Positions 38,605 through 55,848 of a stretch of 64,000 nucleotides of DNA are shown piece by piece (the stretch's first letter is position 1; every line of letters starts with the position of its first letter). This DNA comes from Anthoceros angustus (Eukaryota > Plantae > Anthocerotophyta). Location of the stretch: the NCBI GenBank assembly GCA_010909165.1, contig MU008181.1:186001-250000 (forward strand), written 5' to 3'. The notes beneath the pieces were generated by a model, which saw only the letters and a program-made list of their open reading frames with translations, was not told where the DNA came from and made no database searches. Position numbers and translations under genes: made by a program.

Positions 38605-41600
38605 TCACAGTCGACCCTTACAACTGCAACAACCAGCTGCAAATCGATGCACTCGGTACCCATCCCTTACAACAATGTCTCTCTGTTCAACCCTTGACAT
38701 TATCTCAGTGGAGCTGTGGCAGTCGCTGCACATGCGTAGATTCTTCGTTACCACCAGAGGTGTCCCACTCGGAGTGTTCAAGAGACCAAAAGCCAGAGCC
38801 AGCTTCTCAGCATGCCCACAAAGTGCATCTTCTTTTTCCTTCTCAGAAAGTGGCTTCAGCACCAACTTTGTGTGTGGTACGTGGCCCCCTTCCTGCTTCA
38901 GACGTGCATTCACGCTCTCTACCTTGATTGCAATATCATCTCTGTTTTCTCCCACCACAAATGTGTGTACCTGCTTCTCCACCTCAATGCCTGCCACACC
39001 AGGTTTTTTGCAAGCTCCTGCTACCATTCTCTGTTTTTCGATCCTCTCTGCATCGGTCCACCTACCTGCATCTGCATAGGCATGGGCCATCAGCACATAC
39101 GCAGATGCATTCTGAGGCTCCAGTCTAATCAGACTCTCAAAACACCACGTCGCCCTCAATATATCCCCATGACTTCTGCAGGAATTCAGCAAAGACGTCA
39201 ACCCCACAACATTACTTTGGCTCTCACATGATAATAACATGTTCTCTGCTTCATCCAAGTGGCCTGCACGCCCAAGAAGATCAATCATGCAATTGTAATG
39301 CTCAATACTGGGTTTGATGCCACGTTGTTCCACCATGGAATCAAAATGCTTGCGACCCTCATTCACCAGTCCCGAGTGACTGCATGCTGCTAAAAGGCAA
39401 GTAAAAGTAGTATCATTGGGCTGAATACCTGCGATCAACATCTCCTCAAAACAAGCTAAAGCATGGTGACCTTCATCACAAGAACCACACCCCGCGATCA
39501 GGGCATTCCATGTCACCACATCCTTTGACACCAAGCTGTCAAAAACCCGGCGTGCGTCTTCCAGTTCGCCACATTTTGCATACATGTCCAACAGGCAGTT
39601 GCCCACAACTATGTTATCTAACTGTCCTCTTTCCACAATCTGTGCGTGCAGCCGCCTGCCCTTCTGTAAGGAACCTGAGCTTGCACAGGCCTTCAGAAGG
39701 CAAGCAAAAGTAAAATCGTTCCCCACAATCTGGCCCTCCTGCTCCATTTGCTCACTCAGAACAAGCGCCTCTTGGCCCAAACCTTGCTGTGCATATCCAG
39801 AAATCATGGAATTCCATGTCACCACATCCTTTGTGACCAAGCTATCAAAGACCCAGCGTGCCTCTTCCAGTTCGCCACACTTTGCATACATGTCCACGAG
39901 GCAATTGCCTACAAGTATGTTATCTAGCTGTCCACTTTCCACAATCTGTAAGTGCAGCTGCCTGCCCATCTGTAATGCACCAGCGCTTGCACACGCCTTC
40001 AGAAGGCAAGCAAAAGTAACATGGTTACCCACAATAAAGCCTTCCTGCTCCATTTGTCCATACAGGAAAAGCGCCTCTTGGCCAAGTCCATGATTTGCAT
40101 ACCCGGCAATCAGGGCGGTCCACGTCACTACATCCCTTGTCCTCAAGTTGTCAAAAACCTGGCGTGCATCTTCCATTTGGCCACATTTTACGTACATATC
40201 CACAAGGCAGTTTCCCACAAGTATGTTATCTTGCTGTCCTCTTTCAACAATGTGAGAGTGGAGCTGCCTCCCCTTCTGTATGGCACCAGCACTTGCAATG
40301 GCCTTCAGAAGGCAAGCAAACGTAACATGGTTACCTACAACCAGGCCCTCCTGCTCCATCTGGTCATACAGAAGAAGCGCCTGCTGGGCCAGCCCTTGCT
40401 GTGCATAACCAGCAATCAGGGTATTCCATGTCACCACATCCTTTGTGGTCAAGCTGTCAAAAACCTGGCGTGCAGCTTCTAGTTCGCCACATTTTGCATA
40501 CATGTCCACCAAGGAGTTGCCCACAATAATATTATCCAGCTGCCCTCTCTCCACAATGTGTAAATGCAGTTGCCTCCCCTTCTGTAAGGCACCAGCACTT
40601 GCACAGGCCTTCAGAAGGCAAGCAAAAGTAACATCGCTCTCAACAATAAGGCCCTCTTCCAGCATTTGCCCGTACAGAACAAGTGCCTCTTGGCCGAGAC
40701 CTTGCTGTGCATACCCAGCAAGCAGGGCATTCCAAGTCACCACGTCCTTCGTGGCCAAGTTGTCAAAAACCCGGCGTGCATCTTCCACTTCACCACACTT
40801 TGCATACATGTCCACCAGGCAGTTGCCCACAAGCATGTTATCTAGCAGTCCTCTTGCCACAACCTGTGAGTGCAACTGCCTGCCTTTCTGTAACGCACCA
40901 GTGCTTGCACAGGCCTTCAAGAGGCAAGCATAAGTGACATGGTTACCTACAATGAAGCCCTCCCGTTCCATTTGGTCATACAGAACAAGCGCCTCTTGGC
41001 CAAGCCCATGATTTGCATACCCAGCAATCAGGGACGTCCATGTCACCACGTCCTTTGTGGGCAAGCTGTCAAAAACCCTGCGTGCACCTTCAAGTTCGCC
41101 ACATTTTGCATACATGTCCACCAGGCAGTTGCCAACAAACAAGTTCAGAGAAACGCCACTGTGCAACACATCGTAGTGCACTTCTCTGCCAGATTCCAAG
41201 TCCGCAGCAAAGGCACAAGCTTGAAGGGCTGCTACATACACGTGAGCATCCGCCTTCACACCCGAGCGACGCATCTCATGGTACAGTTCTATGGCGTCCT
41301 TAGGTTTCCCATGTTTAGCATGGGCAGAGATTATGGAACACCACAAGAAGGCATTTGGTTTCCCCACTCTGGTGAACACATCCATCGCCTCCTCTAGTCT
41401 CCCTCCACATGCATACATGCGCAAGATATTGTTCCCCAAGTACGTACTTGACTCGTACCCGAGTTTAACAGCGAGATGATGAACTCGACGCCCCGCAACC
41501 AAATCTTTCTTAGATGCACACAGCTTTAGCACAGTATACAAGAGAGACTCCGAAACAGAACAATTTGTGTGCGCCAGACATTCCAGGGCTCCCACGGCCT

Positions 41601-42126
41601 CTGTAAGCTTCCCCTGCTGACATAACGTGCTCACGGTTACAGCTGTTACCACGCCCATTTCCGATCCTGCACGCCTGCTATCATCCGGTGAGCTGGACTT
41701 GGAAGGAGAGGCACCATGACCCATCTGCATATCCAAAGAAACGAGCTGGTTATCCACCCAAGCTGGCTTAAACATGTTGTCTAACCAGAGGACCTCGCGG
41801 GACCCCTTACGCCGGAAGTCAGGCGAACGAGAGCTCTTCTTACCTCGCCTGTTATCCCACCACATGGCAGGGTCCAGAAAGAATTGTCGCCACAAGAGCT
41901 CCTGCTCCTGCTCCTGGCCCTGGCCCTGGCGACCACCATCGCTGGAAAATCCTTCCCCAGCCATCCAATTGCTCGGAAGTGCTGCGTTCCTGACACTGCT
42001 GCACCTGGACGCCTGGTTGTTTACCAGGGGCTGACTCCCTAAGTTGCGCTGAGCTCCTCGTACAATCCCTGGACAACCACCATTCTGTGGAGGCCACAAT
42101 GGATCGGGTTGCCATACAGTGGCCAT
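38605..42126 (-). CDS. PPR-A: intronless PLS-class PPR protein, 1173 aa, N-terminal OSB-type PDF motif + ~8 PLS triplets + E1/E2 + DYW:KP domain ending GRL
   Basis: Repeats [15 protein letters not shown] / [12 protein letters not shown] / [14 protein letters not shown]-terminus KKPGVAGIEV...[36 protein letters not shown]...GCCSCKGRL. Confidence 0.95.
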   Translation of the reverse strand: MATVWQPDPLWPPQNGGCPGIVRGAQRNLGSQPLVNNQASRCSSVRNAALPSNWMAGEGFSSDGGRQGQGQEQEQELLWRQFFLDPAMWWDNRRGKKSSRSPDFRRKGSREVLWLDNMFKPAWVDNQLVSLDMQMGHGASPSKSSSPDDSRRAGSEMGVVTAVTVSTLCQQGKLTEAVGALECLAHTNCSVSESLLYTVLKLCASKKDLVAGRRVHHLAVKLGYESSTYLGNNILRMYACGGRLEEAMDVFTRVGKPNAFLWCSIISAHAKHGKPKDAIELYHEMRRSGVKADAHVYVAALQACAFAADLESGREVHYDVLHSGVSLNLFVGNCLVDMYAKCGELEGARRVFDSLPTKDVVTWTSLIAGYANHGLGQEALVLYDQMEREGFIVGNHVTYACLLKACASTGALQKGRQLHSQVVARGLLDNMLVGNCLVDMYAKCGEVEDARRVFDNLATKDVVTWNALLAGYAQQGLGQEALVLYGQMLEEGLIVESDVTFACLLKACASAGALQKGRQLHLHIVERGQLDNIIVGNSLVDMYAKCGELEAARQVFDSLTTKDVVTWNTLIAGYAQQGLAQQALLLYDQMEQEGLVVGNHVTFACLLKAIASAGAIQKGRQLHSHIVERGQQDNILVGNCLVDMYVKCGQMEDARQVFDNLRTRDVVTWTALIAGYANHGLGQEALFLYGQMEQEGFIVGNHVTFACLLKACASAGALQMGRQLHLQIVESGQLDNILVGNCLVDMYAKCGELEEARWVFDSLVTKDVVTWNSMISGYAQQGLGQEALVLSEQMEQEGQIVGNDFTFACLLKACASSGSLQKGRRLHAQIVERGQLDNIVVGNCLLDMYAKCGELEDARRVFDSLVSKDVVTWNALIAGCGSCDEGHHALACFEEMLIAGIQPNDTTFTCLLAACSHSGLVNEGRKHFDSMVEQRGIKPSIEHYNCMIDLLGRAGHLDEAENMLLSCESQSNVVGLTSLLNSCRSHGDILRATWCFESLIRLEPQNASAYVLMAHAYADAGRWTDAERIEKQRMVAGACKKPGVAGIEVEKQVHTFVVGENRDDIAIKVESVNARLKQEGGHVPHTKLVLKPLSEKEKEDALCGHAEKLALAFGLLNTPSGTPLVVTKNLRMCSDCHSSTEIMSRVEQRDIVVRDGYRVHRFAAGCCSCKGRL

Positions 42127-42763
42127 CTTCCAGACGCCGCTCTCGGAAGATTGAGATCATGCAACATACAACACAATTCGCAGGCCGTGGCCGGATGCTG
42201 AAGTACCGGGCATGACCAGACCACCCTTAGCAAGCACAGGATTTACCGATGGCCAAGACACCAAAACGAAATCATATGCTCCATTGGAGCAACAAGGTGA
42301 TGACGACAGAAGGACTTCCAGGGGATCGGGATGCTTGTAATCTTTGTCCTGAGGGCATAAACCATGAAACGCGTGTGAGCACAGTTCGCTGTTTAGGGGT
42401 GGACTGAACGTCGGTACCTCCATTCGACTGTGTTGGCTGATAATCAAACACACTTGCACAAGTATCTGGAACATTTACTTGTCTGTTTGGCGGTGCTTGT
42501 TCTTGATCAGGTTTTTCCATATAGGATGGAATCCATCGTCGGTGTGATGGTCCCTAGGACACCCCAAATGGATCGCGCGAGCGACACAAATGATAGGTCA
42601 GGTCTGGATGTGTACCTCGAACTTGCTCTGACATGGACTTATTTGAAGCGTCTTGTTGGACGACCGTGACACAAAAGGGGAGAGGAGGGCCTGTCCGTCA
42701 CATGATCGAGCGTGGTGAGTCTAACACACCCGCTGAGAACTGGCTACTAGTCCATTTTCGTTC

Positions 42764-45364
42764 TCACGGTCGACCCTTACAACTGCAACAACCAGCCGCG
42801 AATCGATGTACACGGTACCCATCCCTTACAACAATGTCTCTCTTTTCAACCCTTGACATTATCTCGGTGGAGCTGTGGCAGTCGCTGCACATGCGTAGAT
42901 TCTTGGTTACCACCAAAGGTGTGCCACTCGGGGTGTTCAGGAGACCAAAAGCCAGAGCCAGCTTCTCGGCATGCCCACAGAGTGCGTCTTCCTTTTCCTT
43001 CTCAGACACTGGCTTCAGCACCAACTTTGTGTGAGGTACGTGGCCCCCTTCCTGCTTCAGACGTGCATTCATGCTCTCGACCTTAGGCGCAATGTCAGAT
43101 CTATTTTCTCCCACCAGAAATGTATGCACCTGATTATTCACCTCAATGCCCGCCTCTGCAGGTTTTTTGTTAGCTCCAGCTACCATTCTCTGTGTTTCAA
43201 TCCTCTCTGCATCAGTCCACATACCGGCATCTGCATAGGCATGGGCCATCAGGACATATGCGGATGCACCATTAGGCTCCAGTTTAACCAGAGTTTCAAA
43301 ACACTGGGCCGCCCTCACTATGTCTCCATGATTTTTGCAGGCATTCAGCAACGACGTCAAACCCACGACATTGTTGCGGCTCTCGCATGATAATAGCATG
43401 TTCTCTGCCTCATCTAAATGGCCTGCACGGCCAAGCAGATCAATCATGCTATTGTAATGGTCAATCGTAGGTTTGATGCCATGCTGTTCAACCATGGCAT
43501 CAAAGTGCTTGCGACCCTCATTCACCAATCCCGCATGACTGCAAGCTACTAAAAGGCAAGTAAATGTGATATCATTAGGCTGAATACCTCCCACCAACAT
43601 CTCCTGAAAACAAGCTAGCGCACTGTGACCTTCATCAGCGGCACCATACCCAGCTATCAGGGCATTCCATGTCACCACGTCCTTTGTGGTCAGGCTGTCA
43701 AAAACACAGCGTGCATCTTCCAGTTCGCCACATTTTGCATACATGTCCACAAGGCAGTTGCCGATAATTACGTTATGCAGATGTCCTCTTTCTACAATCT
43801 GCGAGTGCAGCTGCCTGCCCTTTTGTAAGGCACCGGCACTTGCACAGGCCTTCAGAAGGCAAGCAAAAGTAACATCGTTTCCCACAATCTGGCCCTCCTG
43901 CTCCATTTGTTCATACAGAGCAAGCGCCTCTTGGCCCGAACCTTGCTGTGCATACCCCGCAATGAGGGAATTCCATGTCACCACATCCTTTGTGGTCAAG
44001 CAATCAAAGACCCGGCGTGCATCTTCCAGTTCACCACACTTTGCATACATGTCCACTAGGCAATTGCCTATAAATATATTATCTACCTGTCCCCTTTCCA
44101 CAATCTGTGAGTGCAGCTGCCTGCCCTTCGTTAAGGCACCAGCGCTTGCACAGGCGTTCAGAAGGCAAGCGAAAGTAACATGGTTACCCACAATAAAGCC
44201 CTCCTGCTCCATTTCTTCATACAGAACAAGCGCCTCTTGGCCAAACCCATGATTTGCATACCCAGCAATCAGGGACGTCCATGTCACCACATCCTTTGTG
44301 GCCAAGCTGTCAAAAACCCTGCGTGCATCTTTCAGTTCGCCACATTTTGCATACATGTCCACCAGGCAGTTGCCAACAAACAAGTTAGGAGGAACGCCAT
44401 TGTGCACCACATCGTAGTGCACTTTTCTGCCAGATTCCAAGTCCGCAGCAAAAGCACAGGCTTGAAGGGCTGCCACAAACACGTGAGCATCCGCCCTCAC
44501 ACCTGAACGACGCATCTCATGGTACAGTTGTATGGCCTCCTTAGGTTTCCCATGTTTAGCATGGGCGGAGATTATGGAACACCAGATGAAGGCATTCGGC
44601 TTCCCCACTCTGGTGAACACATCCATCGCCTCATCTAGCCTCCCTCCACCCGCATACATGCGCAAGATATTGTTCCCCAAGTATGCATCAGACTCGTGCC
44701 CAAGTTTAACAGTGAGATGATGCACTCGTCGCCCCGCAACCAGATCCTTCTTAGCTGCACATAGCTTCAACACAGTATACAAGAGAGACTGAGAAACATG
44801 ACAGTTCGTGTGCGCGAGAGATTCCAGCGCTCCCACGGCCTCAGAAAGCTTCCCCTGTTGACACAACGTGCTCACGGTTACAGGCGTTACCACCCCCACT
44901 TCCGTCCCTGCAAGCCTGCCATAATCCGGAGAGCTGGACTTTGAAGGAGAGGCAGTATCACTCATCTGCATATCCAAAGAAACGAGCTGATCATCCACCC
45001 AAGCTGGCTTGAAGATGCTGTTTAACCAGAGGACCTGGCGGGACCCCTTACGCCGGAAGTGAGGTGAACATGAGCTCTCCTCACCTCGCCTGTTATCCCA
45101 CCACATGGCAGGGTCCAGAAAAAATTGTCGCCACAATAGCTCCTGCTCCAGGGCCTGGGCCTGGGGTCTAGAATCCCTGGACAATCGGTCCGCAGCCATC
45201 CCTTTGCTTGGGAGTGCTGCGTTCCGTACACTGCTGCACCTGGACGCTTGGTTGCTTCCCAGCGGTTGACAATCTAAGGCGAGGTGAGCGGGAGCTCGTC
45301 CTAGCATCCCTGTACACCGAATTTGTTGGATACACAACGGATCTGGTTGGCATATAGTTTCCAT
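42764..45364 (-). CDS. PPR-B: intronless PLS-class PPR protein, 866 aa, PDF-like motif + ~5 PLS triplets + E1/E2 + DYW:KP (GRP) domain
   Basis: Paralogue of PPR-A; KKPAEAGIEV, GHAEKLA, CSDCH, ends CSCKGRP. Confidence 0.95.
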   Translation of the reverse strand: METICQPDPLCIQQIRCTGMLGRAPAHLALDCQPLGSNQASRCSSVRNAALPSKGMAADRLSRDSRPQAQALEQELLWRQFFLDPAMWWDNRRGEESSCSPHFRRKGSRQVLWLNSIFKPAWVDDQLVSLDMQMSDTASPSKSSSPDYGRLAGTEVGVVTPVTVSTLCQQGKLSEAVGALESLAHTNCHVSQSLLYTVLKLCAAKKDLVAGRRVHHLTVKLGHESDAYLGNNILRMYAGGGRLDEAMDVFTRVGKPNAFIWCSIISAHAKHGKPKEAIQLYHEMRRSGVRADAHVFVAALQACAFAADLESGRKVHYDVVHNGVPPNLFVGNCLVDMYAKCGELKDARRVFDSLATKDVVTWTSLIAGYANHGFGQEALVLYEEMEQEGFIVGNHVTFACLLNACASAGALTKGRQLHSQIVERGQVDNIFIGNCLVDMYAKCGELEDARRVFDCLTTKDVVTWNSLIAGYAQQGSGQEALALYEQMEQEGQIVGNDVTFACLLKACASAGALQKGRQLHSQIVERGHLHNVIIGNCLVDMYAKCGELEDARCVFDSLTTKDVVTWNALIAGYGAADEGHSALACFQEMLVGGIQPNDITFTCLLVACSHAGLVNEGRKHFDAMVEQHGIKPTIDHYNSMIDLLGRAGHLDEAENMLLSCESRNNVVGLTSLLNACKNHGDIVRAAQCFETLVKLEPNGASAYVLMAHAYADAGMWTDAERIETQRMVAGANKKPAEAGIEVNNQVHTFLVGENRSDIAPKVESMNARLKQEGGHVPHTKLVLKPVSEKEKEDALCGHAEKLALAFGLLNTPSGTPLVVTKNLRMCSDCHSSTEIMSRVEKRDIVVRDGYRVHRFAAGCCSCKGRP

Positions 45365-48058: not shown

Positions 48059-50075
48059 ATGGTGCTCTACAACTTCAAAAAGATCACGGTGGTGCCTACG
48101 GGCAAGGATTTTGTGGATATTGTGCTCTCCCGGACCCAGCGGCAGACACCCACAGTGGTGCACAAGGGTTACGCTATCAATCGCATCCGTCAATTCTACA
48201 TGCGCAAGGTGAAATTCACTCAGCAGACCTTTCATGACAAGCTGAGCACCATCATAGACGACTTCCCCCGCCTTGATGATATCCATCCTTTCTATGGTGA
48301 TTTGCTGAATGTCTTGTATGATAAGGACCACTATAAGCTTGCTCTCGGGCAAATAAACACTGCTCGGAATTTGGTGGAGAAGATTGCCAAGGACTATGTC
48401 CGCCTGTTGAAATATGGAGATTCGTTGTACCGGTGCAAGCAGCTCAAGAAGGCAGCGTTGGGCAGGATGTGCACCCTGATGAAAAGGATTGGCCCTAGTC
48501 TGGCCTACCTGGAGCAGGTTAGGCAGCATATGTCACGGCTCCTTCCATTGACCCTAACACTAGGACTATTCTCATATGTGGGTATCCGAATGTGGGAAGA
48601 GTTCCTTCATCAACAAGATAACGAGGGCCGATGTTGATGTGCAGCCGTATGCATTTACTACTAAATCCCTGTTTGTAGGTCACACGGATTATAAATATCT
48701 GAGATGGCAGGTGATTGATACGCCTGGCATTCTGGATCATCCGCTGGAGGACCGTAATACTATCGAAATGCTGAGTGTGACTGCACTTGCCCATCTCCGT
48801 GCAGCTGTGCTTTTTGTTTGTGATCTGTCTGGGGCATGTGGGTATTCTCTAGCACAGCAGGCTGCTCTGTTCCACAGCATCAAGCCCTTGTTTGCGAACA
48901 AGCCTGTGTTGATTGCCTGCAACAAGATCGACTTGCAGCCCTTGGAGACGCTGTCTGAGGATGAGAAACAGCTTCTTGGTGATATGAGGAAGGAGGCTGC
49001 TAGGTGTTCAGCAGGGGTTTTTGCAGATTCTAGCTCTCTGGACGAGGAGGGTTGTTTGCTGACCATGAGCACCATGACAGAGGACGGGGTGATAGCAGTA
49101 AAAAATGCAGCTTGTGAACGTTTGCTTCAGCAAAGGGTGGAGGTGAAGATGAAGTCAAAGAAAATGAATGACTGTTTGAACAGGATACATGTGGCCATGC
49201 CCAAGGCCAGAGATGCGAAGGATCGGCCACCTTGCATTCCACAAGCTGTACTGGACGCGCAGGCAAATGGTGTCACTGTCTCTCAAGGCAGGGTACTCGA
49301 GAGGGACCTGGAGAACAAGCATGGTGGTGCTGGAGTCTATTCTGCCAATCTCCACAAGCACTACTTGCTGCTGGATGAGAGCTGGAAGGATGACATTGTG
49401 CCTGAAATTGTCGATGGTCACAACATTGCAGACTTTGTGGATGCTGACATCCTGCAGAGGCTTGATGAGTTGGAGCGGGAAGAGGCAGCCCGTGAGGCAG
49501 CTGAGGGTGAAGATGAGGACATGGAAGACGCAGAAGAACTCACTGAAGACGAGAAGAAGGCTCTTGCCGCGATTCGGAGGAGGAAGAAACAGCTGCTATT
49601 AGAGCATCGATCAAAGAAAACTGTAGGTCACAGCAAGCCTGTCATGCCAAGGACAGCTGATCGGGATGGCATGTTGTCCACTGACAGAATGGGAAGGCAC
49701 CTTCGCTCCCTAGGCTTGGATCCAAGTGCTGCCATTGAGAGGGCTCGAAGTAGGTCTGTCTCCAGGAGAGGAAGGAAGAGAGATAGGTCAGTCAGCATGC
49801 CTGCTGAGGATGTGGATGCCATGGACATCGATCAGCCCAGCAAGAGACTGAAGACAAGGTCCAGATCTCGCTCACGTCCTGTTCTTGAGGCCCAGCCTGG
49901 AGAGGGCTACAAGGACACTACTCAAAAGATCAAGGCCATTAAGCTGGGAAGGAAGGCTGTCAAGCAGAGGAATAAGGATGCCAGGAAGGGTGAGGGTGAT
50001 AGAGTTGTGTACAACCCCAAACCGAAACATCTATTTTCTGGCAAGCGGTCAACAGGGAAGACAGACCGAAGGTAG
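48059..50075 (+). CDS. NOG1: Nucleolar GTP-binding protein 1 (NOG1/GTPBP4), intronless; two 1-nt homopolymer deletions at ~48541 and ~48594
   Basis: [53 protein letters not shown]..., G1 region GYPNVGKSSFIN recoverable by restoring one C and one G, DTPGILD, NKID, and C-terminal [19 protein letters not shown]. Confidence 0.95.
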
Positions 50076-50807: not shown

Positions 50808-53800
50808 TTACGGTCGACCCTTGCAACTGCAACAACCAGCCACGAATCGATGGACACGGTACCCATCCCTTACAACAATGTCTCTCTGTTCTAGCCTTGA
50901 CATGATCTCCGTGGAGCTGTGGCAGTCACTGCACATGCGTAGATTCTTGGTTACCACCAGAGGTGTCCCACTCGGAGTGTTCAAGAGGCCAAACGCCAGA
51001 GCTAGCTTCTCAGCATGCCCACATAGCGCATCTTCCTTTTCCTTCTCACCCAGTGGCTTCAACACCAACTTCGTGTGAGGTACGTGTCCTCCTTCCTGCT
51101 TCAGACGCGCATTCGTACTCTCTGCCTTCAGCGCAATATCCTCTCTCCTTTCTCCCACCAGAAATTTTTGTACCTGCTTATTCACCTCAATTGTTGCCAC
51201 TGCAGGTTTCTTGTGAGCCCCTGCTAACATTCTCTGCGTTTCAATCTTGTCTACATCGCTCCACCTACCTGCATCTGCGTAGGCATTGGCCATGAGCACA
51301 TACGCAGACGCCCTGTGAGGGTCCAGCCTAACAATTCTTTCAAAACACCACATAGCCCTCTCTATATCCCCGTGACTTTTGCAGGCATTCAACAAAGTCG
51401 TCAAGCCCACCACATTACTTTGGCCCTCAAAAGACAACAGCATCTTCTCAGCCTCATCCAAATGGCCTGCACGACCAAGAAGATCAATCATGCAATTGTA
51501 ATGCTCAAGAGTAGGTTTGATGCCATGCTGTTCAGCCATGGAATCAAAGTGCTTGCGACCCTCGTGGACGAGATCCGCATGACTGCATGCTAAAAGGCAA
51601 GTAAAAGTAGCATCATAGGCTGAATACCGGCAACTAACATCTCCTCAAAACAAGCTAGTGCCTTGTGACCTTCATCACAAGTACCATACCCAGATATCAG
51701 GGCGGTCCACGTCACCACATTCTTTGTGTTCATGCTGTCAAAAACCTGGCGCGCGTCTTCCAGTTCACCACATTTTGCATACATATCCACCACGCAGGTG
51801 CCCAACACTACGTTATCCAGCAGTCCTCTTTCGACAATCTCCGAGTGCAGCTGCCTGCCCTTCTGTAAGGCACCAGTGCTTGCACAGGCCTTCAGAAGGC
51901 AAGCAAAAGTAACATCGTCAGCCAAAATGAGGCCCGCCTCCTCCATTTGTCCATACACAACAAGCGCCTCTTGGCCGAGTCCTTGCTGTGCATACCCAGC
52001 AATCAGGGCATTCCATGTCACCACATTCTTTGTGGCCAAGCTGTCAAAAACCTGGCGTGCATCTTCCAGTTCACCACATTTTGCATACATGTCCACCAGG
52101 CAGGTGCCCACCACAACGTCATCCAGCAGTCCTCTTTTGACAATCTGCGAGTGCAGCTGCCTGCCCTTCTGTAATGCACCAGTGCTTGCACAGGCCTTCA
52201 GAAGGCAAGCAAAAGTAACCTCATCAGCCAAAATGAGGCCCGCCTCCTGCATTTGTCCATACACAACAAGCGCCTCTAGGCCGAGTCCTTGCTGTGCATA
52301 CCCAGCAATCAGGGTTCCATGTCACCACATCCTTTGTGTTCATGCTGTCAAAAACCTGGCGCATCTTCCAGTTCACCACATTTTGCATACATGTCCACCA
52401 GGCAGGTGCCCAACACTACGTTATCCAGCAGTCCTCTTCGACAATCTGAGTGCAGCTGCCTGCCCTTCTTCTGTAAGGCACCAGTGCTTGCACAGGCCTT
52501 CAGAAGGCAAGCAAAAGTAACATCGTCAGCCAAAATGAGGCCTCCTCCTCCATTTGTCCATACACAAGCGCCTCTTGAGTCCTTGCTGTGCATACCCAGC
52601 AATCAGGGCATTCCATGTCACCACATCCTTTGAGGCCAAGCTGTCAAAAACCTGGCGTGCATCTTCCAGTTCACCACATTTTGCATACATGTCCACCAGG
52701 CGGTGCCCACCACAACGTCATCCAGCAGTCCTCTTTTGACAATCTGAGTGCAGCTGCCTGCCCTTCTGTAAGGCACCAGTGCTTGCACAGGCCTTCAGAA
52801 GGCAAGCAAAAGTAACATCAGCCAAAATGAGGCCCGCCTCCTCCATTTGTCCATACACAACAAGCGCCTCTTGAGTCCTTGCTGTGCATACCCAGCAATC
52901 AGGGTTCCATGTCACCACATCCTTTGTGGCCAAGCTGTCAAAAACCTGGCGTGCATCTTCCAGTTCACCACATTTTGCATACATGTCCACCACGCCGGTG
53001 CCCACCACAACGTCATCCAGGAGTCCTCTTTTGACAATCTGCGAATGCAGCTGCCTGCCCTTCTGTAAGGCACCAGTGCTTGCACAGGCCTTCAGAAGGC
53101 AAGCAAAAGTAACATCAGCCAAAATGAGGCCCGCCTCCTCCATTTGTCCATACACAACAAGCGCCTCTTGAGTCCTTGCTGTGCATACCCAGCAATCAGG
53201 GTCGTCCACGTCACCAAACTCTTTGTGGCCAAGCTGTCAAAAACCTGGCGTGCATCTTCCAGTTCACCACATTTTGCATACATGTCCACCAGGCAGGTGC
53301 CCACCACGACGTCATCCAGCAGTCCTCTTTCGACAATCAGTGAGTGCAGCTGCCTGCCCTTCTGTAAGGCACCAGTGCTTGCACAGGCCTTCAGAAGGCA
53401 AGCAAAAGTAACATGGTCAGCCAAAATGAGGCCTGCCTCCTCCATTTGTCCATACACAACAAGCGCCTCTTGGCTGAGTCCTTGCTGTGCATACCCAGCA
53501 ATCAGGGCATTCCATGTCACCACATCCTTTGTGGCCAAGCTGTCAAAAACCTGGCGTGCATCTTCCACTTCACCACATTTTGCATACATGTCCACCAGGC
53601 AGGTGCCCACGACTACATTATCCACCAGTCCTCTTCTAACAATCAGAGAGTGCAGCTGCCTGCCCTTCTGTAAGGCACCAGTGCTTGCACAGGCCTTCAG
53701 AAGGCAAGCAAAAGTAACGTGGTTAGCCAAAACCAGGCCCTCCTGCTCCATTTGTCCATACACAACAAGTGCCTCATGTCCAAGACCTTGCTGTGCATAG

Positions 53801-55848
53801 CCAGCAATTAGGGCAGTCCATGTCACCACATCCTTTGTGGCCAAGCTGTCAAAAACCTGGTGTGCTTCTCCCAGTTCACCACATTTTGCATACATGTCCA
53901 CCAGGCAATTGCCCAACACTACGTCATCCAGCAGTCCTCTTTCGACAATCTGCGAGTGCAGCTGCCTGCCCTTCTGTAAGGCACCAGTGCCCGCACAGGC
54001 CTTCAGAAGGCAAGCAAAAGTAACATCGTCAGCCAAAAGCAGAGCCTCCTGCTCCATTTGTCCATACACAACAAGCGCCTCATGTCCGAGCCCTTGCTGG
54101 GCATACCCAGCAATCAGGGCATTGCATGTCACCACATCCTTTGTGGCCATGCTGTCAAAAACCTGGCGCGCATCATTCAGTTCACCACATTTTGCATACA
54201 TGTCCACCAGGCAGTTGCCCAACACTACGTCATCCAGCAATCCTCTTTCCACAATCTGTGAGTGCAGCTCCCTGCCCTTCTGTAAGTCACCATTGCTCGC
54301 ACAGGCCTTCAGAAGGCAAGCAAAAGTAACATGGTTAGCCAAAAGCAGGCCCTCTTGCTCCATTTGTCCATACACAAGCAGCGCCTCACGTCCCAGCCCT
54401 TGCTGGGCATATCCAGCTATCAGGGCATTCCATGTCACCACATCCTTTGAGGCCATGCGGTCAAAAACCTGGCGAGCACCTTGCACTTCGCCACATTTTG
54501 CATACATGTCCACCAGGCAGTTGCCAACAAATAAATTAGCAGGAATTCCACTGTGCAACACATCACTGTGCACTTTTCTGCCAGATTCCAAGTCGGAGGC
54601 AAATGCACAAGCTTGAAGGGCAGCGACAAAGACGTGAGCATCGGCCTTCACTCCTGACCTACGCATCTCATGGTAGAGTCGTATGGCCTCCTTAGGTTTC
54701 CCATGCTTAGCATATGCAGAGATTATGGAAGACCACATGAAGGCACTTGGTTTGCCCACCCTGGAGAACACATCCCTGGCCTCCTGCAGACTACCTCGAC
54801 ATGCATACATGCGCAAGATATGGTTCCCCAAGTATGCATCCGACTCGTACCCGAGTTTCACAGTGAGATCATGAACTCGTCGCCCCATAACCAAATCCTT
54901 CTTAGCTGTACACAGTTTTAGCACAGTGTAAAACAGAGACTGAGAAATAGCAAAGTCTGTCTGCGCCAGACATTCCAGGGCTCCAACGGCCTCAGACAGC
55001 TTCCCCTGCTGACATAACGCGATCACGTTTACAGCCGTTACGACGCTCATTTCCGATCCTGCACGCGTGCCAGCTTCAGGATTATCTGGAGAGCTCGACT
55101 TGGAAGGAGACACACCATGACCCATCTGAATATCCAAAGAAACGAGTTGCTCATCAACCCAAGCTGGCTTGAACATGCTGTTTAACCACAGGACCTCGCC
55201 GGACCCCTTCCGCCGGAAATCAGGCGAACGGGAGCTCTTCTTATCTCCTCTCTTGTCCCACCACATGGTAGGGTCCAGAAAAAATTGCTGCCACAGGTGC
55301 TCCTGCTCCTGGCGACGACCATCGTCGGAAAACCCGTCCCCGCCCACACATTTTCTCGGAAGTGCAAGTGCTGGGCTCCTCACCCTGCTCCACCTAGAGC
55401 CTATTTCCGATTCTTCACGCCTCCCAGGTTCAGTCTCATCCGGAAAGATGGACTCGGAAGGAGAGGCATCATGACCCATCTGCATATCCAAGGAAACGAG
55501 CTGCTCATCAACCCAAGCTGGCTTAAACCAGAGCACCTCCCCGGACCCCTTACGCCTGAAGTGAGGCGAACGAAAGCTCTCCTCATCTCGTCTGTTGTCC
55601 CACCACATGGTAGGTTGTTGCCACAACTGCTCCAGCTCCTGGCAACGACCATCGCTGGAAAGCCCGTCCCCACCCACACATTTTCTCGGAGATGGAAGTG
55701 CTGGGCTCCTCACACTCCTGCAACTGGAGGCTTGGTTTGCCAGCGGTTCACTCCCTAAGGTGAGGTGAGCAGGAGCTCCTCGTAGAATCCCTGTACACAC
55801 ACCAATTTCTTGGGTCCACAATGGGTCCGGTTTCCATGCTGTGGCCAT
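50808..55848 (-). CDS. PPR-C: long PLS-class PPR-DYW:KP (GRP) gene with two N-terminal PDF-like motifs and ~12 PLS triplets; frameshifted as assembled (errors or pseudogene)
   Basis: Open from 55848 to ~53170, then multiple 1-4 nt deletions in four repeat units (52260-53220) and a 1-nt deletion at ~51616 (ccta-tgat vs cctaatgat). The C-terminal ORF has [29 protein letters not shown]. Confidence 0.85.

Follow-up and report, generated by a model that had tools for sequence, protein, structure and literature searches.

Two intact PPR editing-factor genes and a third, frame-broken one in the 64-kb window (the whole 64,000-nucleotide stretch of Anthoceros angustus contig MU008181.1 that was analysed) encode an N-terminal segment of ~58 aa which profile searches and predicted folds establish as a genuine PDF domain, homologous to the PDF of the OSB proteins. 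The PDF-PPR fusion is a new domain architecture built of two known modules, and the claim of the first-pass annotation that it was the best candidate for an undescribed system is overstated to that extent. The PDF has so far been the hallmark of OSB proteins, the guardians of organellar genome stability, and PPR editing factors have so far been regarded as pure RNA binders; the PDF-PPR design, which is under selection, joins both fields. OSB2 is also known as pTAC9.

The peptide of the PPR-A motif is absent from the plus-strand translation of positions 41731-41900 and is encoded on the minus strand, where the motif lies inside three long ORFs, PPR-A, PPR-B and PPR-C (Table 1). A tblastn search of the window with the ~58-aa PPR-A motif returned four copies and no more; no fifth copy was found in the window, the next best match having an E of about 0.5 or weaker. 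Copies had been annotated in PPR-A, in PPR-B and twice in PPR-C with the strand left unstated, and all four were recovered within a few bases of those positions. Alignments of the window copies show the conserved Pro-Asp-Phe signature together with the flanking LW, WWDNR, LWL and PxWV blocks. The name-giving triplet reads PDF in PPR-A and in the second copy of PPR-C, and PHF in PPR-B and in the first copy of PPR-C, which in addition to its PHF has two in-frame deletions of 4 residues each. The first helix of the PPR-A PDF is predicted by the structural model to start ~8 residues earlier than the tblastn match, near position 41922.

Table 1. Coordinates of the PDF-PPR genes, their domains and their repeat arrays in the window
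Feature	Positions	Strand	Evidence
PPR-A, intact ORF, 1173 aa	38605-42126	-	ORF and translation
DYW:KP domain of PPR-A	38605-39009	-	KP box, HAE, CSDCH, Lys88, C-terminal GRL (pattern check)
306-bp array in PPR-A, 5.4 copies	39489-41138	-	Tandem Repeats Finder
Ser/Pro-rich linker from PDF to first PPR motif, PPR-A residues 138-157	41656-41715	-	predicted disordered
PDF domain of PPR-A, residues 77-134	41725-41898	-	tblastn 100%; OSB-only profile 70.8 bits
PPR-B, intact ORF, 866 aa, architecture as PPR-A, ends GRP	42764-45364	-	ORF, Pfam, pattern check
Related array in PPR-B, 2.4 copies	43645-44374		Tandem Repeats Finder
PDF domain of PPR-B	44966-45139	-	tblastn 84% identity, E 3e-33; OSB-only profile 60.5 bits
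PPR-C, frame-broken as assembled	50808-55848	-	ORF list with translations
PPR-C coding pieces, differing frames	53092-55848 (918 aa), 52718-53209, 52348-52602, 51590-52264, 50808-51539	-	
Related array in PPR-C, 9.4 copies, 91% matches, 2% indels	51685-54525		Tandem Repeats Finder
PPR-C second PDF, complete	55126-55299	-	tblastn 82%; OSB-only profile 75.0 bits
PPR-C first PDF, degenerate	55480-55629	-	tblastn 70%; OSB-only profile 46.3 bits

Pfam has no PDF model and returned no family for the N-terminal pieces or for 80 PDF domains, so the identity of the segment was tested with profiles in both directions. A PHROGs scan of the PDF segments also returned no family. The PPR-only profile was built from the four window copies and three copies from one Logan protein (P0001) and was searched against 1.84 billion representative proteins, which gave 951 matches at E ≤ 1e-3, 382 of them at E ≤ 1e-10. 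Most of the matches listed were proteins of 260-560 aa with the motif near the C-terminus. An SSB/OB domain (PF00436) was located upstream of the motif in 9 of 10 sampled matches, 5 of them above the Pfam cut-off, and was detected upstream by BLAST in at least 83 of the best ~150 matches. One matched cluster is named 'protein OSB1, mitochondrial-like' and comes from Populus. The opposite direction used an OSB-only profile of 29 PDF domains, every one from an SSB-bearing parent protein, which avoids circularity. With this profile the four copies reached 46-75 bits (E 2.5e-7 to 2.8e-16 for database size Z = 1.84e9), and the best of 900 shuffled N-termini in the control reached 6.4 bits.

AlphaFold2 modelling of PPR-A residues 68-144 from an 80-sequence alignment gave a pLDDT of 89.7 and a pTM of 0.75 and predicts the order helix-strand-strand-strand-helix. 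Foldseek comparison of the model with the Swiss-Prot AlphaFold library gave four matches in all, Arabidopsis OSB1, OSB2, OSB3 and OSB4, each at its PDF region, with TM values by query of 0.61-0.82 between structures that are predictions on both sides. The modelled PDF superposes on predicted OSB1 with a TM of 0.82 and an rmsd of 1.5 Å over 69 residues (36% identity). In the AFDB clusters, Foldseek found entries named OSB1, OSB2 or OSB3 plus uncharacterised ones. No solved structural relative of the fold was found by PDB sequence profile, Foldseek or a wide VIA-align search (best Z 4.1). The first-pass annotation had likened the motif to that of OSB proteins and had proposed an OSB-derived HMM and a structural superposition as checks; all four copies scored significantly, the superposition agreed, and the identification holds because the profiles match both ways and the model matches the PDF regions of OSB1-4. 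Chance resemblance to the OSB PDF could draw on the lack of a Pfam match and on word-index protein searches (three shared 5-mers needed), which came out essentially blank with 0, 1 and 3 proteins and are uninformative on distribution. The distance between the profile scores and the shuffle control, the 382 strong matches and the OSB1-4 fold refute this explanation, and we give it practically no weight. A phage relationship was likewise rejected. The ESM Atlas feature search gave Phage_gp49 at only 0.75, which is below the lead threshold, and two phage clusters came out of the Atlas shape search with a TM of 0.61; the lead was dropped because BFVD Foldseek, PHROGs and Pfam provided no support.

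The PDF of the window proteins and that of Arabidopsis OSB1-4 are the same ~55-aa domain with an identity of 33-37%. They share all invariant and near-invariant columns, and W12, W22, D24, R26, K29, P35, D36, F37, L46, W47, P54 and W56 are common to PPR-linked and OSB PDFs. OSB proteins, like PDF-PPR proteins, may carry 1-3 tandem PDFs. The arrangement differs: the OSB PDF is C-terminal and occurs with an OB/SSB-like domain, whereas the PDF of PPR-A, PPR-B and PPR-C is N-terminal, follows the presequence and precedes a PPR array with no OB domain. Pfam searches of all three proteins and their N-terminal pieces found no OB/SSB domain, PF00436 or other, in agreement with the absence of an SSB/OB fold claimed earlier. 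The three proteins therefore are not OSB proteins, since the domain that defines that family is missing.

PPR-A and PPR-B are, as judged from their sequences, PLS-E-DYW:KP genes of the hornwort GRP subgroup and putative U-to-C editors. The Pfam PPR, E_motif and DYW_deaminase families are all present in both proteins (4e-120, 9e-12 and 1.8e-32 in PPR-A). The order in PPR-A is presequence, PDF, linker, PLS array, E motif and DYW:KP domain, and the combined Pfam and pattern checks bear out the proposed place of the PDF ahead of a PLS-PPR array with a terminal DYW:KP domain. A DYW:KP domain is recognised by KP in place of PG, HAE, CxxCH, Lys88 and GRP in place of DYW (PMC11845758, PMC9478123), and hornwort KP proteins fall into two subgroups, one of which is named after its GRP end (PMC9478123). 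Every published sequence feature of DYW:KP is present in the C-terminal 133 residues of PPR-A and PPR-B. The window genes have the KP box, HAE (not HSE) at 66, CSDCH and a non-DYW end, which is GRP in PPR-B and PPR-C and GRL in PPR-A, and, with numbering from the KP lysine, the lysine of KNLR falls at 88. In hornworts, the PPR-DYW:KP proteins assigned to the GRP subgroup (Gerke 2020; Gutmann 2020; both after PMC9478123) have the same PLS array, E motifs and 133-aa DYW:KP domain with KP box, HAE, CxxCH, Lys88 and GRP. The N-terminal PDF goes unmentioned in that account of GRP proteins, and the designer proteins KP2 and KP3 are made without it. These GRP-type designer proteins edit U to C at 22-26% (PMC9478123), and the PDF is thus dispensable for catalysis in them. 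U-to-C activity has been shown solely for such designer consensus GRP proteins; for PPR-A and PPR-B it is predicted.

The presequence ahead of the PDF has ~76 aa, contains Ser/Arg and is a putative organellar targeting sequence. An AlphaFold2 model of PPR-A residues 61-330 (pTM 0.58) consists of a confident PDF followed by confident PPR hairpins. The linker between them has a pLDDT below 50 over 20 residues (model residues 78-97) with confident domains on both sides, and on this basis the PDF is taken to fold on its own and to be flexibly tethered.

PDF-PPR proteins were also found in Adiantum capillus-veneris, A. nelumboides, Ceratopteris richardii and Diphasiastrum complanatum, with more in several transcriptome assemblies. 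They have 1-3 PDF copies, and all fusions seen place these ahead of the array, on its N-terminal side. Adiantum KAI5076972, Ceratopteris KAH7429238 and KAH7415342 and Diphasiastrum KAJ7535625 share the order of PPR-A, with a short linker and a PLS array, and are annotated merely as hypothetical or PPR proteins. The fern and lycophyte proteins are 31-33% identical to PPR-A along ~270 residues, a stretch that takes in the PDF and the first PPR motifs. A shape search of the ESM Atlas added three Streptophyta PPR/DYW clusters of 57-127 members (TM 0.79-0.82). In a tree of 80 PDF domains the four window copies join the PPR-linked copies of ferns in a single clade (SH-aLRT 95); the tree rests on few columns and leaves the Diphasiastrum copy and one other unplaced. 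The clade comprises 11 rows, ten PPR-linked and one from a long-branched PDF-only protein. Its signature 'KPxWVD' sets it apart from the OSB PDFs through Lys53 and Asp58, positions that are mostly Thr and Lys in OSB PDFs; all core positions are shared by both groups. The simplest reading of these sequences is one old fusion that would predate the hornwort-fern split.

The fern and lycophyte PDF-PPR proteins terminate in E motifs and have no KP domain. At the Diphasiastrum locus a classical HSE...CxDCH...DYW domain of the PG type lies further on in a different frame and is interrupted by a stop, and is thus a decayed remnant. The PDF clade shared by hornworts and ferns and the lycophyte gene with its decayed classical DYW indicate that the fusion is ancient and not KP-specific. 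A special link of the PDF to reverse (U-to-C) editing, as the first-pass annotation suggested, is not supported in view of these PLS/E-type proteins, the Diphasiastrum remnant and designer KP proteins that edit with no PDF (PMC9478123). Introns of the Diphasiastrum gene interrupt each PDF close to profile position 26, whereas the window genes are intronless. Exon shuffling through a shared intron was considered and is unsupported: in an OSB1-like gene of Populus, the single OSB gene sampled, both PDFs lie in one exon.

Transcription was evaluated with Logan contigs from run X1, which was guessed to be RNA and holds 0.66 of the sampled words. Contigs across the repeated PPR body are mixtures of paralogues that are 90-95% alike, and for this reason zero-difference contigs alone were used. 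One exact match covers 41926-42436 and takes in the start codon of PPR-A (42126) together with the 310 nt that precede it, a second lies inside PPR-A at 41309-41428, and a third at 44732-44996 extends into the PDF of PPR-B. The intergenic bins at 42472-42655 and those past 45784 have no contig coverage, which fits RNA rather than DNA as the source of the contigs. No canonical intron that would excise the N-terminus is present. PPR-A and PPR-B thus appear to be transcribed, and the PDF segment of PPR-A is probably transcribed as well, the contigs over its motif being paralogue mixtures.

Selection was measured by region as Nei-Gojobori dN/dS between the three paralogues in pairs. The PDF gave values of 0.20-0.35, a small region of 58 codons in which the three pairs are concordant, and the first 254 residues of the PPR array gave 0.23-0.30. 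The presequence (0.50-0.68) and the linker (0.35-0.74) were higher. Purifying selection on the PDF equals that on the RNA-binding PPR array. This result, and the conservation of all core residues from hornwort to fern PPR proteins, speak against the PDF being a functionless relic that spread with the PPR subfamily as this grew by dispersed and tandem duplication. A relic would fit the broken PPR-C with its degenerate first PDF and the PHF of PPR-B, and we consider it very improbable.

Published work on OSB proteins offers a guide to function. Reviews report the PDF to be responsible for ssDNA binding and, in OSB1, to be sufficient for it (PMC6963530, PMC6451138). Arabidopsis OSB1 and OSB2, the only sources of PDF biochemistry, prefer ssDNA over dsDNA and RNA according to PMC4166229, measurements that were made with the whole OSB proteins. 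By homology, the reading we favour, with rather less than even confidence, is that the PDF is an ssDNA or nucleoid anchor of the editing factor; it follows from the retained aromatic and basic positions taken together with the ssDNA preference of OSB1 and OSB2. On its flexible tether the PDF would grip single strands regardless of sequence and keep the editing factor where ssDNA is exposed in the organellar nucleoid, with transcription bubbles, R-loops and replication or recombination intermediates as candidate sites. There the nascent transcript would come within reach of the PPR array and the C-terminal DYW domain. Lying at the opposite end of the protein from the catalytic domain, the PDF would be an accessory localisation or affinity module, outside catalysis and site recognition. 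Reciprocal profile and fold homology to the OSB PDF with its core columns kept, a disordered linker between confident domains that could serve as the tether, dN/dS as low as in the PPR array and below the flanks, and the age of the fusion given by the hornwort and fern clade are all consistent with this proposal, as are the OSB1 and OSB2 preferences reviewed in PMC6963530, PMC4166229 and PMC6451138. Editing by designer KP2 and KP3 with no PDF (PMC9478123) agrees with a non-catalytic role. Other observations count against an ssDNA anchor. Lys53 and Asp58 of the PPR-linked clade could alter the ligand, the nearly invariant Asp of P-D-F is replaced by His in PPR-B, and abundant OSB, WHY and SSB proteins already coat organellar ssDNA. 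An RNA-bound PPR array would also expose the tethered PDF to very high local RNA, where even a weak affinity for RNA could dominate.

The local RNA concentration and the clade-specific substitutions make a 5' RNA clamp plausible, and this is the main rival. The PDF would grip ssRNA nonspecifically upstream of the PPR footprint and so add affinity or slow dissociation. The PDF is N-terminal in all fusions seen, and PPR arrays lie on their RNA with the N-terminus towards the 5' side; a flexible linker and a copy number of 1-3 suit an avidity module, and the changes to Lys53 and Asp58 could mean a new ligand. Long PLS arrays are generally thought to bind RNA tightly unaided, which counts against a clamp. 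So do the function of designer KP proteins that have no PDF (PMC9478123) and the preference of OSB1 and OSB2 for ssDNA over RNA reported in PMC4166229. An RNA clamp is possible and somewhat more doubtful than the ssDNA anchor. Less likely than either, like the functionless relic, is a protein-protein module, which we regard as improbable. The PDF would here serve oligomerisation or docking to OSBs, PDF-only repeat proteins or editosome partners, and might replace helpers such as MORFs. MORFs are not known outside seed plants. Multi-repeat proteins made of PDFs only do exist (P0003-P0005, P0010, P0017), and the fold has no solved relative from which a binding surface could be read. The OSB1 PDF is, however, reported in PMC6963530 to suffice for ssDNA binding, and the conserved Trp, Arg and Lys pattern would fit nucleic-acid binding.

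The ssDNA anchor has a bolder extension, which we offer as speculation that is a good deal less secure than the anchor itself. Seedless plants may have a subfamily of PPR editors anchored through the PDF to the displaced strand of bubbles or R-loops, which would make both C-to-U and U-to-C editing transcription-coupled. Taken to its extreme, this idea could at times bring the tethered DYW domain to the ssDNA itself. The PDF-PPR design is common to hornworts, ferns and lycophytes, the lineages with the heaviest editing, and may provide a handle on the place and time of organellar editing, possibly nucleoid-bound and co-transcriptional. It also bears on engineering. Designer U-to-C editors derived from the GRP consensus omit the PDF and perform poorly, and the window supplies two intact natural PDF-PPR genes, PPR-A and PPR-B, that are apparently transcribed.

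A description of the PDF-PPR fusion was not found among 8.4 million full texts, a collection whose coverage does not extend to Gerke 2020, Gutmann 2020 or Zaegel 2006, and within it none of the four texts that use 'PDF motif' or 'PDF domain' in the OSB sense concerns PPR proteins. 'PPR' is absent from a 2026 survey of 182 OSB genes, and so are 'OSB' and 'PDF' from a kingdom-wide study, also of 2026, of domain fusions in editing factors (PMC13386178). The statement that no PDF-PPR-deaminase architecture had been characterised agrees with this literature search within the same coverage. A parallel in design is the RRM-PPR fusion found kingdom-wide (PMC13386178), which likewise places a generic single-strand module on a sequence-specific PPR array. 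Its RRM is unrelated to the PDF domain.

The 306-bp unit of the tandem arrays corresponds to one P-L-S triplet (Tandem Repeats Finder), and the frame breaks of PPR-C fall inside its array. PPR, E_motif and DYW_deaminase are found in PPR-C only on separate frame pieces, and the DYW:KP domain that ends in GRP is on the last of them, 50808-51539.

The PLS arrays of the PPR paralogues PPR-A, PPR-B and PPR-C contain 306-bp tandem repeats, which were located with Tandem Repeats Finder. Each 306-bp unit encodes one P-L-S triplet, and the units are 81-91% identical within the three arrays. Unequal crossing-over seems to be the cause of both expansion and contraction of these arrays. Such growth and loss of units would make the RNA-recognition code periodic. 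PPR-C has at least four frame changes (50808-53209, minus strand), every one of which lies inside or adjoins its 306-bp array. PPR-C could be a pseudogene, or the frame changes could be assembly indel errors in the repeat.

Features of the window and of the lycophyte PDF-PPR gene (L001, Diphasiastrum locus).
Feature	Position	Strand	Detail
306-bp array	39489-41138	-	PPR-A, 5.4 copies
306-bp array	43645-44374	-	PPR-B, 2.4 copies
306-bp array	51685-54525	-	PPR-C, 9.4 copies
PPR-C frame changes	near 53100-53200, 52600-52720, 52264-52348, 51539-51590	-	
499-aa ORF	48576-50075	+	between PPR-B and PPR-C
Diphasiastrum complanatum PDF-PPR gene	CM055103.1; L001:4454-5347, L001:8302-8679		

In the P-D-F triplet, His takes the place of the almost invariant Asp in the PPR-B PDF (44966-45139) and in the first PPR-C PDF (55480-55629). 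The latter also lacks two 4-residue blocks, one at the end of helix 1 and the other in the loop preceding KPAWV. The two PPR-C PDFs (55126-55760) are the products of a tandem duplication, and the duplicated unit included not only the PDF but also part of a presequence-like segment (SVRSPALPS...).

The representative-library matches P0002-P0005, P0010 and P0017 include proteins composed almost wholly of PDF repeats, with 8-13 copies. P0017 has a presequence and four PDF copies with Gln-rich spacers. These PDF-repeat proteins suggest that the PDF is an independent module that also exists outside OSB and PPR proteins. PDF repeats are apparently fused to a kinesin motor in P0039 (Coptis chinensis KAF9616283), which also has an upstream SSB-like part, and to an IBB-domain protein in AFDB A0A484M7X6. 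In both cases an OSB gene and the gene next to it have probably been joined into one gene model.

Two independent ESM Atlas searches, one by features and one by shape, placed phage (Uroviricota) hypothetical proteins near the PDF fold (model mf1bef095364a), with a feature score of 0.75, below the lead threshold, and a shape TM of 0.61. AFDB clusters returned a single weak match (E 0.15, organism not listed). A phage relationship was rejected because BFVD, PHROGs and Pfam gave no support for it.

In the Diphasiastrum complanatum PDF-PPR gene, an intron interrupts each PDF near profile position 26, whereas a single exon encodes both PDFs of the Populus OSB1-like gene. The Diphasiastrum PDF exons vary among several isoforms. 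A classical DYW domain (HSE...DYW) lies beyond the annotated stop in a different frame, with a stop codon within it. The 499-aa ORF presumably resembles a nucleolar GTP-binding protein (NOG1-like) over the C-terminal two thirds of that protein.
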